Shown here piece after piece: positions 13,627-28,176 of a DNA stretch of 34,304 bases. Below the pieces are notes generated by a model, which was not told the origin of the DNA, did not search any database, and saw only the letters and a list, made by a program, of their open reading frames with translations. The position numbers and the translations under genes were made by a program. The DNA is from Octopus bimaculoides (lineage: Eukaryota): contig NC_068988.1 in assembly GCF_001194135.2 (NCBI RefSeq), positions 91,020,658-91,054,961 on the forward strand, in the 5' to 3' direction. Within the stretch, counting starts at the first letter, position 1, and every line of letters starts with the position of its first letter.

Positions 13627-13994
13627 CTACAGTACAGTGGTTGAATTATCTTTTTGAGTGTTTTTGCCATCTTCAATAAGCAATTCTCGCTTTTTCGGCA
13701 TCGTTAAGCGTAATTTTCCCCAGAATTTCTCAAGTTTGCACCTATCTTCTTCATTGGACCCTGGCCATTCCAAATAGGTGATTGACTTGAGGATGTAAGA
13801 AAGGTTTTTGTCCAGTTCTAGTTTATTTAAGTCACGGAATATAATTGGGATGATCTTTTGACGTTTCTTAAGCATTTCCTGGTGAGCAATTTGATATTCC
13901 ATGCGTGTCCATTCGCTGATCACATAATCAGGGGACAGAACTAAGATTGTTCGTCGACTCTTCTCCACAGCGTTAATTATGTTGTTGGAAATAG
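13627..13994 (-). CDS. EGF-TM-TIR receptor, coding exon 4 (TIR C-terminal half and stop)
   Basis: Acceptor ttttttcttgcag|CT; phase 1 completes ACT. Reads TISNNIINAVEKSRRTILVLSPDYVISEWTRMEYQIAH..IIPIIF..TYLEWP..KFWGKLRLTMP..TVL*, with TIR boxes 2-3. Confidence 0.93.
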
Positions 13995-14084
13995 CTGCAA
14001 GAAAAAAGGCAAAAATAAGAGTTGTTGTCGCCGTTCTTGTTGTTTAGCACCAAGTAAGCCCCAATACGGCAAATCTATTTTATT

Positions 14085-14141
14085 CTTTTATTCTTTTACT
14101 TGTTTCAGTCATTTGATTGCGGCCATGCTGGAACATTACCT
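14085..14141 (-). mobile_element. SINE 3' tail fragment
   Basis: tattcttttattcttttacttgtttcagtcatttgattgcggccatgctgg, same tail as at 23255 and 32445. Confidence 0.75.
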
Positions 14142-15702
14142 TAATATGTTTAATAATGGTCCAGCATTGGCCATCCCATCTTTATTTACAGCAGATTCTA
14201 CATGCGTTTTACTCCACCGTTTATTTTAGACGGTACAGTATGATTTGAGGGAACTTTGACTGCTACTTCTACTAGGTGGATCGATCCCACAAAAATTATT
14301 TCCTTGGTTCGTAAAACTGAAGTATTCAGATATGCTAATAAATTAATTGAATTATAATTGAATTATACTTGTTTCGCGTCCGAATATTATGAATTCTGGC
14401 CCACTTTAATAGAATTAGGAAATGAGTTCTTTCTGCTAGAAAATGAAGAGGAGAAGCATCTAAACTTTTAAAACCAAAAACAAATATCATGCGTAGAAAT
14501 TAATAATTTACATTCGTATTTATTTAAATTTCCCCCATATCATAACTAGTAAAACTGCTAATTAAAGTGGTAGACTAAGAATTATACTTGAAGCTAATTG
14601 GATAACGATAATCTACGCGGAGCTTTAACTCATACAGTAGTAGTACAACTAACTGCACACGCGAGATAAATACATACATAAACATATACGTATATATACA
14701 TATTTATGTGTATATGTACACATGTTCATACACATATATTTACATATACAAAACGTATATATATATATATATATATATATATATATATATATATATATAT
14801 ATATATATATATGTGGGGGGTGTGTGTATATATATAAATATTCTAAAAATCTTAGGGAATAATAAGTATTCCAGGTTTTCAGGAACTACCTAATTGTCTA
14901 GTAAGTTAATTTCCACTAACCTTTATATTCTGTAACTTTAAAATCTACTCGTAGAAAACACTTTCATCATAAAGATATTTTACTAGTAGCATTAGGGAAC
15001 TTTCAATAGTTACAACGACTTTAGAATAATCATAACATAGTAATGGTCTATCATACATGCAATACAATAGTAACTGATGAACTTAAGTAAAAGAGAATAA
15101 TTAGGTAATCTAGATCTTCAAATTGTAGCAGAACATATGTAATGATACGTACAATACCCCATTATAGCGTTAGACTGATACGATATATTCTTCTTTAAAC
15201 ATCGATTTTCCAAAGGAGAGATAAATTTGTTTTTCAAATTATAAAGGCATTTTCTCACTTGTATGTAGTAATTATGGTTAAAGGAATTAGCTTTAATTCT
15301 GCTCTTAGAAGTAGGCCTAAAGACGGGATTATACGTAGTATCATAATCAATGTTATTATAGGTGTTATCCCAAATTTCAGATACTAATTTTACTTTTGTT
15401 ATATGCTGCTATAAGTTCAACAAATGTCTGGTAGGTGAATAGGAAAATTTTACTTTATGGCAATTAAATAATTTACCATACTTACTTGGAAGTGGGAAAT
15501 ATTTATTCAGTGCCGTAAAGAATTTCCGAGGAATATTAGTAGCTATGTCAGATGCGAATCGTGCATTATATGAGATAATATTCCTTGATTTAATCTTTCT
15601 ATCTTTTATAGATACGTTTTTTTTATATTAATATTAGCATCATCAACGTTAGATATATTCTTGCCGTAATTTTTATGCTTAAAGTTATACATATCAATAA
15701 AC

Positions 15703-15941
15703 TCACAATTATTATTATTATTATTATTATTATTATTATTATTATTATTATTATTATTATTATTATTATTTACATTATTTACATTTGACGGATATTTCTC
15801 CTCATCTTGTTTGTTGTTAACACAACATTTCGGTTGATGTACCCTCCAGCCTTCAACAGGTGTCTTGGGGAAATTTCGAACCTGGGTTCTCATTCTTAAG
15901 GTATTTTTCGATGTTGTTATTAATCACTACGCCATATGCCC
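15703..15941 (-). mobile_element. Short repeat with tRNA-like 5' end, degenerate hammerhead and (AAT)n tail
   Basis: Minus strand: gggcatatggcgtagtg (A-box-like), then gacac-CTGTTGA-aggctggagggtacatcaacc-GAAA-tgtt-gtgtt, then an (AAT)n tail. Confidence 0.6.
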
Positions 15942-15943
15942 GT

Positions 15944-16100
15944 GGACATATGGCGTAGTGGTTAAGAGCGCGGGCTACTAACCCCAAGATTCCGAGTTCA
16001 ATTCTAGGCAGTGACCTGAATGATAATAATAATAATAATAATAATAATAATAATAATAATAATAATAATAATAATAATAGTAATAGTAATAATAATAATA
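15944..16100 (+). mobile_element. tRNA-derived SINE head with (AAT)n
   Basis: ggacatatggcgtagtggttaagagcgcgggctactaacccc..gagttcaattctaggc shows A and B boxes, followed by an AAT repeat. Confidence 0.75.
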
Positions 16101-16107
16101 ATAATAT

Positions 16108-25470: not shown

Positions 25471-26417
25471 ATCAAATTATATATTGTTATTTGATTCGCT
25501 GTCTGATAGGAAATGTCTTGCATGTTTCTCCTACATATACAATTTTGTAGCTCCATTTAACGAATGAAATACGTGTAATGGTGAATAAACAATACTAAAA
25601 AGTATAATACGATATGTATTTATACATACGTATATGTACACACACACGCACGCACACACACACACACACACACACACACACACACACACACACACACACA
25701 CACACACACACACACNNNNNNNNNNNNNNNNNNNNNNNNNNNNNNNNNNNNNNNNNNNNNNNNNNNNNNNNNNNNNNNNNNNNNNNNNNNNNNNNNNNNN
25801 NNNNNNNNNNNNNNNNNNNNNNNNNNNNNNNNNNNNNNNNNNNNNNNNNNNNNNNNNNNNNNNNNNNNNNNNNNNNNNNNNNNNNNNNNNNNNNNNNNNN
25901 NNNNNNNNNNNNNNNNNNNNNNNNNNNNNNNNNNNNNNNNNNNNNNNNNNNNNNNNNNNNNNNNNNNNNNNNNNNNNNNNNNNNNNNNNNNNNNNNNNNN
26001 NNNNNNNNNNNNNNNNNNNNNNNNNNNNNNNNNNNNNNNNNNNNNNNNNNNNNNNNNNNNNNNNNNNNNNNNNNNNNNNNNNNNNNNNNNNNNNNNNNNN
26101 NNNNNNNNNNNNNNNNNNNNNNNNNNNNNNNNNNNNNNNNNNNNNNNNNNNNNNNNNNNNNNNNNNNNNNNNNNNNNNNNNNNNNNNNNNNNNNNNNNNN
26201 NNNNNNNNNNNNNNNNNNNNNNNNNNNNNNNNNNNNNNNNNNNNNNNNNNNNNNNNNNNNNNNNNNNNNNNNNNNNNNNNNNNNNNNNNNNNNNNNNNNN
26301 NNNNNNNNNNNNNNNNNNNNNNNNNNNNNNNNNNNNNNNNNNNNNNNNNNNNNNNNNNNNNNNNNNNNNNNNNNNNNNNNNNNNNNNNNNNNNNNNNNNN
26401 NNNNNNNNNNNNNNNNN

Positions 26418-26747
26418 GAACAGCCTGCTCGTGAAATTAACGTGCAAGTGGCTGAGCACTCCACAGACACGTGTACCCTTAACGTAGTTCTCGGGGATAT
26501 TCAGCGTGACACAGTGCGACAAGGCTGACCCTTTGAATTACAGGCACAACAGAAACAGGAAGTAAGAGTGAGAGAAAGTTGTGGTGAAAGAGTACAGCAG
26601 GGTTCGCCACCATCCCCTGCCGGAGCCTCGTGGAGCTTTTAGGTGTTTTCGTTCAATAAACACTCACAACGCCCGCTCTGGGAATCGAAACCGCGATCCT
26701 ATGGTCGCGAGTCCGCTTCCCTAACCACTGGGCCATTGCGCCTCCAC
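26418..26747 (-). mobile_element. tRNA-derived SINE (3' end lost in gap)
   Basis: Near-identical to 10868-11197. Confidence 0.88.
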
Positions 26748-26965
26748 CATACGTACGTACATACATACATACATACATACATACGTACATACATACGTGC
26801 ATACATACGTGCATACATACATACATACGTACATACATAGATGCATACATACGTGCATACATACATACATACATACATGCATACATACCTGCATACATAC
26901 ATACATACATACATACATACATACATACATATATACATACATAAATATATACAAACATACATGCA
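26748..26965. repeat. (TACA)n / (TGCA) tetranucleotide microsatellite
   Basis: Directly visible. Confidence 0.9.
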
Positions 26966-27036
26966 TATGTGTGGCATTGATTTCCGTTTACTGCAATATC
27001 TGTATAGTGAACCAGCAGCAGGTATCTGACTGAATA

Positions 27037-27160
27037 TATCACAGACACGTGTACTTTTCACGTAACATGTACTTTTCATGTAACATGTACTTTTCATGTA
27101 ACATGTACTTTTCATATCACAGACACGTGTACTTTTCATATAACACTCAGCGTGACACAG
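27037..27160. repeat. 18/24-bp minisatellite (tgtaacatgtacttttca)
   Basis: Three 18-bp units flanked by two 24-bp variants tatcacagacacgtgtacttttca. Confidence 0.85.
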
Positions 27161-27623
27161 TATGACGTTTACAATTACGTCATCCGACGAACTTCCAGAT
27201 ATATCTATCTCACCATTTCACATAAAAACTTTGTGCCAACTCTGGGCTTTTGTCCCTTAGATTACACGCTTTGCAGTGTTATTGAATCCGAACCTCATGG
27301 TTGCAAACGAGATTCTTGATCTGTCAGCCATACTGCGTCTACTCACACACAGAAAAAGATATGCGTATCTGTATGCATGTCCGTGTGAGTGTGCGTGTGT
27401 GGGTGCATGCGTGTGTGTATGTAGTATATGCACATAATATCCTTTCCTGTAGACGTTGACCACAACTATACAAACAAAACAACAATATTTTAATCTGACC
27501 GATATTGAACGGCCGTTGAAGTACATAGGCACTACTTCTTCCTCCCGTCTATATATATTATAAAGTATAATTTAATATGAACTGTAATAAGCTGATAATA
27601 TTAAAAAAAACACTTTTACTAAC

Positions 27624-28176
27624 CTTCTATGGTGCAATTTGTATCTGGCTTATAATAGCCCTTACAGGAACATATTTCATCTCCATTGTGTAGGATGCAT
27701 TCTCCATGTAAACAGTTGCGGGTACAACCTATATTACACGTCTCTCCAATCCAACCATCTTCACATTGACAGCGTGACGTCACATTATTGATGTTACTAC
27801 AAGAACCATGAACGCAAACCATTACGTTGCACACTTCATGATTACATTTTTTTCCTGCATAGCCAGAATCACACTTGCATTCCATACTGCAACTTTCGTT
27901 ATCAAATGTGCACTTGCCGTGATTGTGGCATGTGTCTGGCGTGCATTCATTTCTACAATTTTTGGATTCATTTGTATGGTTACAATATTTTCCATCGAAC
28001 TTCGGCGGACAGACGCATGCTGCTTTGCATTCACTATCCTGTCTACATGTTCCTCCGTTCTTGCAAGGGTCAACAAATGAACATATATTATAGCTACATA
28101 TTACTGTTTCACTCACAGAGAAACATGCAATGAAAGACATCGAAAATATTAACAACTTTACAGTTGACATTTCCAT
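27624..28176 (-). CDS. EGF-TM-TIR receptor, coding exon 1 (signal peptide plus 4 EGF repeats)
   Basis: MEMSTVKLLIFSMSFIACFSVS signal-peptide-like start, then four EGF-type Cys patterns (e.g. CKNGGTC..CVCPPKFDGKYC; CQCEDGWIGETC). Donor GAA G|gttagt is phase 1 and joins exon 2 in frame. Confidence 0.9.

Follow-up and report, generated by a model that had tools for sequence, protein, structure and literature searches.

Animal receptors that signal through a TIR (Toll/interleukin-1 receptor) domain are taught as proteins with an ectodomain of leucine-rich repeats (LRRs), as in the Toll-like receptors (TLRs), or of immunoglobulin (Ig) modules, as in the interleukin-1 receptor (IL-1R) family. A further group, the EGF-TIR proteins, in which the TIR domain accompanies epidermal growth factor (EGF)-like modules, may be classified in the survey that Gerdol et al. 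(2017; cited in PMC6321704) reportedly made of bivalve TIR-domain proteins. EGF-TIR has been a named class among the TIR adaptors since the immune-gene survey of Crassostrea gigas in 2015 (PMC4346834), and the immunome of Aplysia californica (PMC9334734) files two EGF-TIR genes, LOC101855416 and LOC101856027, with the adaptors and calls their function unknown. The split-receptor concept concerns the Hydra HyTRR proteins, which have no LRRs in their ectodomain (PMC6321704). The TLR repertoire of cephalopods is the smallest among molluscs (PMC10279657), and transcripts of MyD88, IRAK, and TRAF6 have been reported in the haemocytes of Octopus vulgaris (PMC4199593). Here, we describe a gene, LOC106882186, on the minus strand of a 34,304-nucleotide (nt) stretch of the Octopus bimaculoides genome (the window, to which all coordinates refer unless otherwise indicated) and confirm that its four coding exons constitute an intact gene for a membrane protein with EGF-like modules outside and a TIR domain inside the cell.

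Gene structure and annotation

The four exons, reverse complemented and joined, gave 1233 nt that translated without interruption into 410 codons followed by TAG. Their lengths place all three introns in phase 1, and every internal border is canonical, with GT donors (gtaagt or gttagt) and AG acceptors that close a pyrimidine-rich tract (Table 1). The original prediction, made from the DNA letters, had proposed exactly this arrangement of exons, splice sites, and intron phases for a 410-amino-acid (aa) protein and had in effect rebuilt by eye an existing model: the product agrees at every residue with RefSeq XP_014788259.1 (isoform X1 of LOC106882186, named there as an uncharacterized protein) and is present in UniProt as A0A0L8FNR3, a "TIR domain-containing protein." The exact gene is already annotated; its architecture is real and intact but not new. 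Automatic names for this one gene diverge, from "delta-like protein C" and "slit homolog 1" to "protein draper" and "adhesive plaque matrix protein 2."

Table 1. Positions of coding exons, protein segments, splice sites, and introns of LOC106882186 in the window
Feature	Coordinates	Strand	Exon	Remarks
Coding exon 1: signal peptide and all four EGF-like modules	27624..28176	-	1	553 nt, ends in phase 1
Start ATG	28176-28174	-	1	
Signal peptide, aa 1-22	28176-28111	-	1	
EGF1	28098-27982	-	1	
EGF2	27957-27844	-	1	
EGF3	27831-27736	-	1	
EGF4	27726-27634	-	1	
Exon 1 GT donor	27623-27622	-		
Intron 1	24652..27623	-		2972 nt, including 702-N gap 25716-26417; gap edges are (TG)n and (TATG)-type microsatellites
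Coding exon 2: remaining stalk, transmembrane segment, RYR stop-transfer, juxtamembrane helix	24484..24651	-	2	168 nt, phase 1-1, AG acceptor and GT donor
Transmembrane helix, aa 199-221	24610-24542	-	2	
RYR stop-transfer and conserved juxtamembrane helix ending YEDH	24541-24485	-	2	
Intron 2	18909..24483	-		5575 nt, including 200-N gap 19244-19443
Coding exon 3: N-terminal third of TIR	18765..18908	-	3	144 nt, phase 1-1; includes helix alphaA and strand betaB
TIR Box 1, YDAFISF	18897-18877	-	3	
TIR Box 2/BB loop, RDFLVGE	18786-18766	-	3	
Intron 3	13995..18764	-		4770 nt, including 260-N gap 16480-16739
Exon 4 AG acceptor	13996-13995	-	4	
Coding exon 4: rest of TIR, tail, stop	13627..13994	-	4	368 nt
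Remaining TIR	13992-13690	-	4	
TIR Box 3, FW	13725-13720	-	4	
20-aa tail, then TAG stop	stop at 13629-13627	-	4	

The junctions fall at aa 185, 241, and 289, and the proteins of Octopus sinensis, O. vulgaris, Argonauta hians, and two decapodiforms are colinear at these points, with no insertions. The orthologous locus of O. sinensis (L001), which contains zero N, has four coding exons with lengths identical to those of O. bimaculoides. Two decapodiform Logan contigs of 2455 and 1700 bp carry the whole open reading frame (ORF), from signal peptide through EGF-like modules and transmembrane (TM) segment to TIR domain, unbroken; because the ORF is uninterrupted and in-frame stops precede the ATG, we regard these contigs as cDNA-like. 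The protein of one of them is 91% identical to a fragment from the cuttlefish Acanthosepion pharaonis, and a 441-aa protein in the same 90% cluster is present on 77 contigs. A tblastn search of the window returned no paralogous TIR or EGF exons elsewhere in it, and searches of protein relatives retrieved one gene per octopus species.

RefSeq predicts two further products of the O. bimaculoides gene: isoform X2 skips exon 3, with Boxes 1 and 2 of the TIR domain, and isoform X3 skips exon 2, with the TM segment. The all-phase-1 layout means that either exon 2 (TM segment) or exon 3 (start of the TIR domain) can be skipped without loss of the frame, and the symmetry of exons 2 and 3 explains how RefSeq can predict both isoforms as in-frame products. 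Predicted alternative 3' exons truncate or remove the TIR domain in isoforms X3 and X4 of O. sinensis and in a 300-aa form of O. vulgaris. The exon-skipped isoforms, themselves predictions, could serve as nonsignaling variants.

Anatomy of the protein

LOC106882186 encodes a type-I membrane protein with a cleavable signal peptide, a rod of four disulfide-locked EGF-like modules, a short stalk, one TM segment, a conserved juxtamembrane helix about 20 residues long, and a receptor-type TIR domain. In a Pfam scan of the 410-aa protein, the TIR model (PF01582) matched aa 245 to 400 with an E value of 9e-26 (91 bits; cut-off, 21.3) and EGF_2 (PF07974) scored 26.1 bits (cut-off, 22.1); in the octopus protein, neither the generic EGF model nor that for teneurin-type EGF reached its cut-off, and the latter was significant in 16 of 31 relatives. 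The same scan returned no LRR family, even at an E value of ≤1, and no Ig family. The EGF-like modules are delimited by their cysteine pattern (C-x-C...G..C), the first two (C27-C65 and C74-C111) having eight cysteines each and the last two (C116-C147 and C151-C181) six each. The ectodomain has 28 cysteines, all invariant across eight cephalopod sequences, and five N-x-S/T sites. Kyte-Doolittle analysis found exactly two hydrophobic segments, a signal segment at aa 3 to 28 and the TM segment at aa 196 to 228, the latter followed by RYR. The stalk comprises 17 aa (182 to 198), which corrects an earlier figure of about 16, and the TM helix (aa 199 to 221) ends 21 residues before the TIR domain.

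An AlphaFold2 model built on a 31-sequence alignment (mean predicted local distance difference test score, 77) gave a signal helix and four modules of beta hairpins, followed by a TM helix at 196 to 221, a juxtamembrane helix at 225 to 234, and a five-stranded TIR fold. The order of signal peptide, four EGF-like modules, TM segment, and TIR domain put forward in the original prediction is borne out by this model together with the Pfam, hydropathy, and cysteine results. Foldseek searches with the modeled TIR domain retrieved IL-1RAcPb, as the top match, and the TIR domains of TLR1, TLR2, TLR6, and TLR10, with target-normalized TM-scores of 0.7 to 0.8, and searches with the modeled ectodomain retrieved DLL1 and Notch1 EGF4-7. 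By sequence, the best matches in the Protein Data Bank were the TIR domains of TLR2, TLR1, and TLR6 (4e-23 to 2e-20). Boxes 1 (YDAFISF), 2 (RDFLVGE), and 3 (FW) are all present, and the TIR domain is nearest to those of protostome Toll/Tollo proteins and of vertebrate TLR1, TLR2, and TLR6.

The EGF-TIR family

Relatives were gathered by a single-sequence search and then with a profile of 31 of them, which together yielded at least 58 near-full-length public sequences. Family members were found among cephalopods, gastropods, and bivalves and in one annelid, Owenia. Cephalopod members come from three species of Octopus, from Argonauta, and from Acanthosepion, and gastropod members from Lottia, Haliotis, Patella, Littorina, Babylonia, Aplysia, Lymnaea, Bradybaena, Candidula, and Batillaria. 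The bivalve members belong to Solemya, Dreissena, Mercenaria, Mya, Sinanodonta, Potamilus, Pinctada, Pecten, Argopecten, Ylistrum, Saccostrea, Ostrea, Mytilus, Ruditapes, and Mactra. The family profile retrieves Aplysia LOC101856027 with an E value of 3.8e-113, and among profile matches with E values of ≤1e-40, LRR-bearing proteins (Tollo-like TLRs) enter at 2e-45. The octopus TIR domain is 56 to 57% identical to those of the Haliotis, Lottia, Solemya, and Owenia members, 38 to 46% identical to those of LRR-bearing Toll/Tollo-type proteins, and 32 to 35% identical to those of Mytilus TLRs. Judged on these sequence relationships, LOC106882186 is a single-copy cephalopod member of a lophotrochozoan EGF-TIR family. 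The remark in the original prediction that lophotrochozoan surveys had recorded EGF with TIR was accurate: the oyster (PMC4346834) and Aplysia (PMC9334734) catalogs list such proteins, and LOC101856027 falls within the same family.

In 56 of the 58 relatives, a strongly hydrophobic 19-mer lies 19 to 27 residues (mostly 25) upstream of the TIR domain and is preceded by a cysteine-rich region of 12 to 52 cysteines. This arrangement indicates that the family is membrane receptor-like and does not consist of cytosolic adaptors. The surveys treat EGF-TIR proteins as adaptors of unknown function, whereas the sequences resemble type-I membrane receptors, and the label of adaptor is likely wrong for these membrane proteins. 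From octopus to Owenia, the family retains the juxtamembrane motif ..W[RK]xR......Y.FQ.YED.DGK. The near-constant spacing between TM segment and TIR domain, together with this motif, suggests that the two are rigidly coupled.

The cephalopod members are minimal, with four EGF modules, a tail of 15 to 20 aa after the TIR domain, and a total length of 406 to 441 aa, whereas most of the other members have 50 to 660 residues after the TIR domain and some have up to approximately nine EGF modules. Cephalopod proteins also differ from most other EGF-TIR proteins in carrying valine for proline in the BB loop. The domain pair is shared with the EGF-TIR proteins of C. gigas and with both Aplysia genes, and the similarity to Aplysia LOC101856027 extends to a signal peptide, a cysteine-rich EGF ectodomain, a TM segment that precedes the TIR domain by 21 residues, and a TIR domain of TLR type.

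With canonical Toll proteins and TLRs (protostome P-type Toll/Tollo and vertebrate TLR1, TLR2, TLR6, and TLR10), the octopus protein shares type-I topology, a single TM segment, and TIR Boxes 1 to 3, and its TIR domain is 38% identical to that of human TLR2. It differs in having four EGF-like modules in place of an LRR solenoid with LRRNT and LRRCT, and the TIR domain of its family has specific insertions, one set following Box 1 and the other preceding Box 3. Members of the IL-1R family, including SIGIRR/TIR8 and IL-1RAcP, likewise join a non-LRR ectodomain to a TM segment and a TIR domain, but the octopus ectodomain is made of EGF modules instead of Ig modules. Hydra HyTRR-1 and HyTRR-2, which have been proposed to pair with HyLRR proteins, are LRR-less membrane TIR proteins like that of the octopus, and the crystal structure of the Hydra TRR-2 TIR domain matches the octopus TIR model with an E value of ~1e-7 and a TM-score of 0.76. 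The HyTRR ectodomain is very short, in contrast to the structured four-EGF rod of the octopus protein.

Sequence constraint between octopus species

The ratio of nonsynonymous to synonymous substitution rates (dN/dS) was estimated against O. sinensis by the Nei-Gojobori method, with bootstrap intervals. It was 0.66 over the whole coding sequence (dS, 0.128; dN, 0.085), 0.21 in the signal peptide, 0.20 in the stalk, TM, and juxtamembrane segments, 0.58 in the TIR domain, and 0.42 for stalk, TM segment, and TIR domain together. The two species differ at 39 of 162 residues of the EGF region, at 3 of 56 of the stalk, TM, and juxtamembrane segments, and at 14 of 150 of the TIR domain, where the changes cluster in two surface loops (344 to 347 and 368 to 381). 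The nucleotide identity of exon 1, at 87.7%, is no higher than that of the adjoining intron (75 to 94%), and that of exon 3 is 99.3%. Constraint sits on the cysteine scaffold, on the TM/juxtamembrane segment, and on the core of the TIR domain.

Assembly gaps and neighboring elements

All three gaps within the gene are intronic (Table 1), and the same gaps remain in GCA_001194135.2, where the window matches CM046608.1 in reverse complement at approximately 91.02 to 91.06 Mb. Blastn anchors flanking each gap were mapped colinearly to the gap-free O. sinensis locus. The equivalent of the 702-N gap, L001 11487-12337, spans 850 bp from one nearest anchor to the other, a distance of 1311 bp in the window, and gives microsatellite translation only; that of the 200-N gap is a (TG)n-rich stretch of 294 bp (window, 293 bp) without a domain-bearing ORF. 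Around the 260-N gap, O. sinensis carries 10.6 kb of extra sequence: intron 3 is 16 kb in that species, against 4.8 kb in O. bimaculoides, and is filled with reverse transcriptase (RT) ORFs of long interspersed nuclear elements (LINEs). Gene-strand translations of the O. sinensis equivalents, inspected by eye and not by a Pfam scan, contained no LRR or Ig sequence, only microsatellite peptides or LINE RT ORFs. The microsatellite- and LINE-only DNA at these positions rules out that the gaps conceal exons for LRR or Ig modules, and the claim that the protein lacks LRR and Ig modules held both here and in the Pfam scan.

A fourth gap, at 28243-28508 (266 N), lies 67 nt upstream of the ATG and had not been flagged earlier; no stop interrupts the frame between this gap and the ATG, and the promoter and 5' untranslated region of the O. 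bimaculoides gene are unread. An N-terminal extension through it is ruled out by an in-frame stop 25 codons upstream in O. sinensis and by similar stops in the cDNA-like contigs; since both the O. sinensis locus and the decapodiform contigs are stopped upstream in frame, Met1 is taken as the start. Gap edges that were checked (for example, 25531-25715, 19190-19243, 6348-6538, and 12276-12340) consist of (TG/CA)n, (TA)n-type, or TATG-like microsatellites. Breakage of the assembly at repeats, and not a loss of unique sequence, probably accounts for the gaps.

Several mobile-element remnants were recognized. On the plus strand of the window, positions 457-2788 hold a decayed gag-pol of a long terminal repeat retrotransposon in short ORFs (DUF7083, 2e-13; RVT_1, 9e-6; RT_RNaseH, 1e-20), and positions 6622-7008 hold an N-terminal fragment of a mariner/Mos1-type transposase (HTH_48, E = 4e-21). 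C-terminal fragments of a LINE-type RT (zf-RVT, E = 2e-4) occupy 16161-17035 of the plus strand, opposite to the gene, within intron 3 and on both sides of gap 16480-16739. Related LINE copies lie on the gene strand in intron 3 of O. sinensis (L001 23520-34129), including a 691-aa stop-free stretch from 27087. The next gene called downstream in O. sinensis, a carboxylesterase (COesterase) at L001 57864-69957 on the minus strand, opposite in orientation, has no counterpart within the window.

Discussion

We put at approximately 60% the probability that LOC106882186 encodes an EGF-TIR type-I surface receptor or coreceptor that signals via TIR-TIR contact with MyD88. The fast-evolving EGF ectodomain would bind a ligand or partner that may be microbial, endogenous, or carried on a neighboring cell; binding would dimerize or cluster the receptor and so bring the cytosolic TIR domains together, and the clustered domains would nucleate MyD88 by homotypic TIR contacts, from which the signal could pass through IRAK and TRAF6 to Rel/NF-kB. 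The all-phase-1 layout is compatible with a Toll-type TM-TIR cassette having been joined to EGF modules by exon shuffling. The original prediction envisaged a third receptor class. Such a class would not be an unrecognized one, since the protein and two splice isoforms are in RefSeq and UniProt and the at least 58 near-full-length relatives are public. A broader form of the proposal, in which EGF-TIR proteins are a third, ligand-activated class of TIR surface receptor of the Lophotrochozoa with a rapidly diversifying EGF rod and the cephalopod copy senses a microbial or damage ligand via MyD88, is offered only tentatively and is, in our estimation, rather unlikely to hold in full.

A number of observations weigh against the assignment as a MyD88-coupled receptor. 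The BB-loop proline, on which the coupling of TLR2 and TLR4 to MyD88 critically depends, is replaced by valine in all cephalopod sequences (RDFLVGE or RDFVVGE) and is kept in most gastropod, bivalve, and Owenia members of the family (RDF[IVLT]PG). The replacement is not proof of lost function, because aligned Toll/Tollo-type LRR-TIR proteins, including three named insect ones, likewise carry valine or alanine at this position. The dN/dS of the EGF region was 0.96, with a bootstrap 95% interval of 0.51 to 2.09. The purifying selection that the original prediction had read from the clean frame is therefore only partly borne out, for the cysteine scaffold, the TM/juxtamembrane segment, and the TIR core. 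The difference between the EGF region and the cytosolic part is no more than suggestive (bootstrap P of ~0.07 for an EGF value no higher than the cytosolic one), and positive selection on the EGF region is not claimed, as the interval spans 1. The approximately neutral rate of the ectodomain loops fits either a diversifying recognition surface or weak or relaxed constraint. The exact O. bimaculoides protein was on no transcript in the assembly collection, where X1 is recorded solely on a genome contig, and the products of isoforms X2 and X3 are absent from the records of that collection; because an exact-protein transcript was not found, RNA support for the O. bimaculoides gene rests on the RefSeq models and on orthologues. 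The literature that we searched on the EGF-TIR family consists of catalog mentions, and no study of a ligand, partner, expression, or signaling and no cephalopod-specific study was found in it; matches to "TIR-EGF" were TIR-EGFP fusions and are unrelated.

The rival that survives best, which we consider possible though improbable, is that the protein is a noninitiating modulator or coreceptor, either a SIGIRR/TIR8-like brake that would sequester MyD88 or the TIR domains of TLRs or a HyTRR-like subunit that would operate with a separate ligand-binding partner, the EGF rod serving for docking only. The short ectodomain of ~160 aa and the exchange of the BB-loop proline in cephalopods would suit such a role, as would the presence of zebrafish SIGIRR and Hydra TRR-2 TIR domains among the structural matches, the TIR-truncated and TM-less isoforms predicted by RefSeq in three octopus species, and the grouping of EGF-TIR proteins with adaptors and regulators in the oyster and Aplysia surveys. 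Boxes 1, 2, and 3 are otherwise intact, however, the match to TLR2 (4e-23) is far better than those to SIGIRR (5e-12) or TRR-2 (2e-11), and the aligned Toll/Tollo-type LRR-TIR proteins, those of insects included, also have valine or alanine at the BB-loop position.

A role in development or cell-cell recognition, in which EGF modules like those of Notch, Delta, or teneurins would bind a ligand carried by a neighboring cell and a Toll-type TIR domain would relay the signal, in the manner of insect Toll-6, -7, and -8 in neural and epithelial patterning, seems to us less probable again. The resemblance of the ectodomain to the EGF modules of Notch, Delta, and teneurins is in keeping with this role, as are the Toll/Tollo type of the closest nonfamily TIR domains and the single-copy state of the octopus gene, without an expansion like those of immune receptors; the near-neutral evolution of the ectodomain (39/162 residues different; dN/dS, 0.96) would be unusual for a conserved developmental ligand-receptor pair. 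On sequence evidence, both the modulatory and the developmental roles are inseparable from that of a MyD88-coupled receptor.

It is highly improbable that the TIR domain is an NAD+-cleaving enzyme (NADase) of the SARM1, plant, or bacterial type instead of a scaffold. A glutamate, E321, is invariant in the 31-sequence family alignment, and there are weak matches to SARM1, RUN1, ROQ1, and AbTIR (1e-7 to 3e-3 for the NADase TIR domains), but the TIR domains of scaffold receptors match 15 to 20 orders of magnitude better, in sequence and structure. Against an enzymatic role, we also know of no NADase activity shown so far for TLR-type TIR domains with the same glutamate. Least probable of all is that the gene model is a chimera of neighboring EGF and TIR genes or lacks exons hidden in gaps, for which the three intronic gaps, the one just upstream of the ATG, and the failure to retrieve an exact-match O. 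bimaculoides transcript might be cited, since the same four-exon structure is present in gap-free O. sinensis DNA with only repeats at the gap equivalents, the decapodiform cDNA-like contigs carry the whole architecture in one ORF, and the same architecture recurs in 56 of the 58 relatives.

In summary, the gene, its isoforms, and its family were already public, and our analysis adds the constant spacing between TM segment and TIR domain, the exchange of the BB-loop proline for valine in cephalopods, a near-neutral ectodomain built on invariant cysteines, and the all-phase-1 exons. Membrane proteins that join an EGF ectodomain to a TIR domain occur across the molluscs and have been present in genome surveys for a decade, labeled as adaptors. 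The octopus copy is the smallest and simplest, a single-copy gene of four exons encoding 410 aa, and could provide a convenient entry point for identifying the ligand of these proteins and learning whether an EGF rod is able to drive signaling by a TIR domain.

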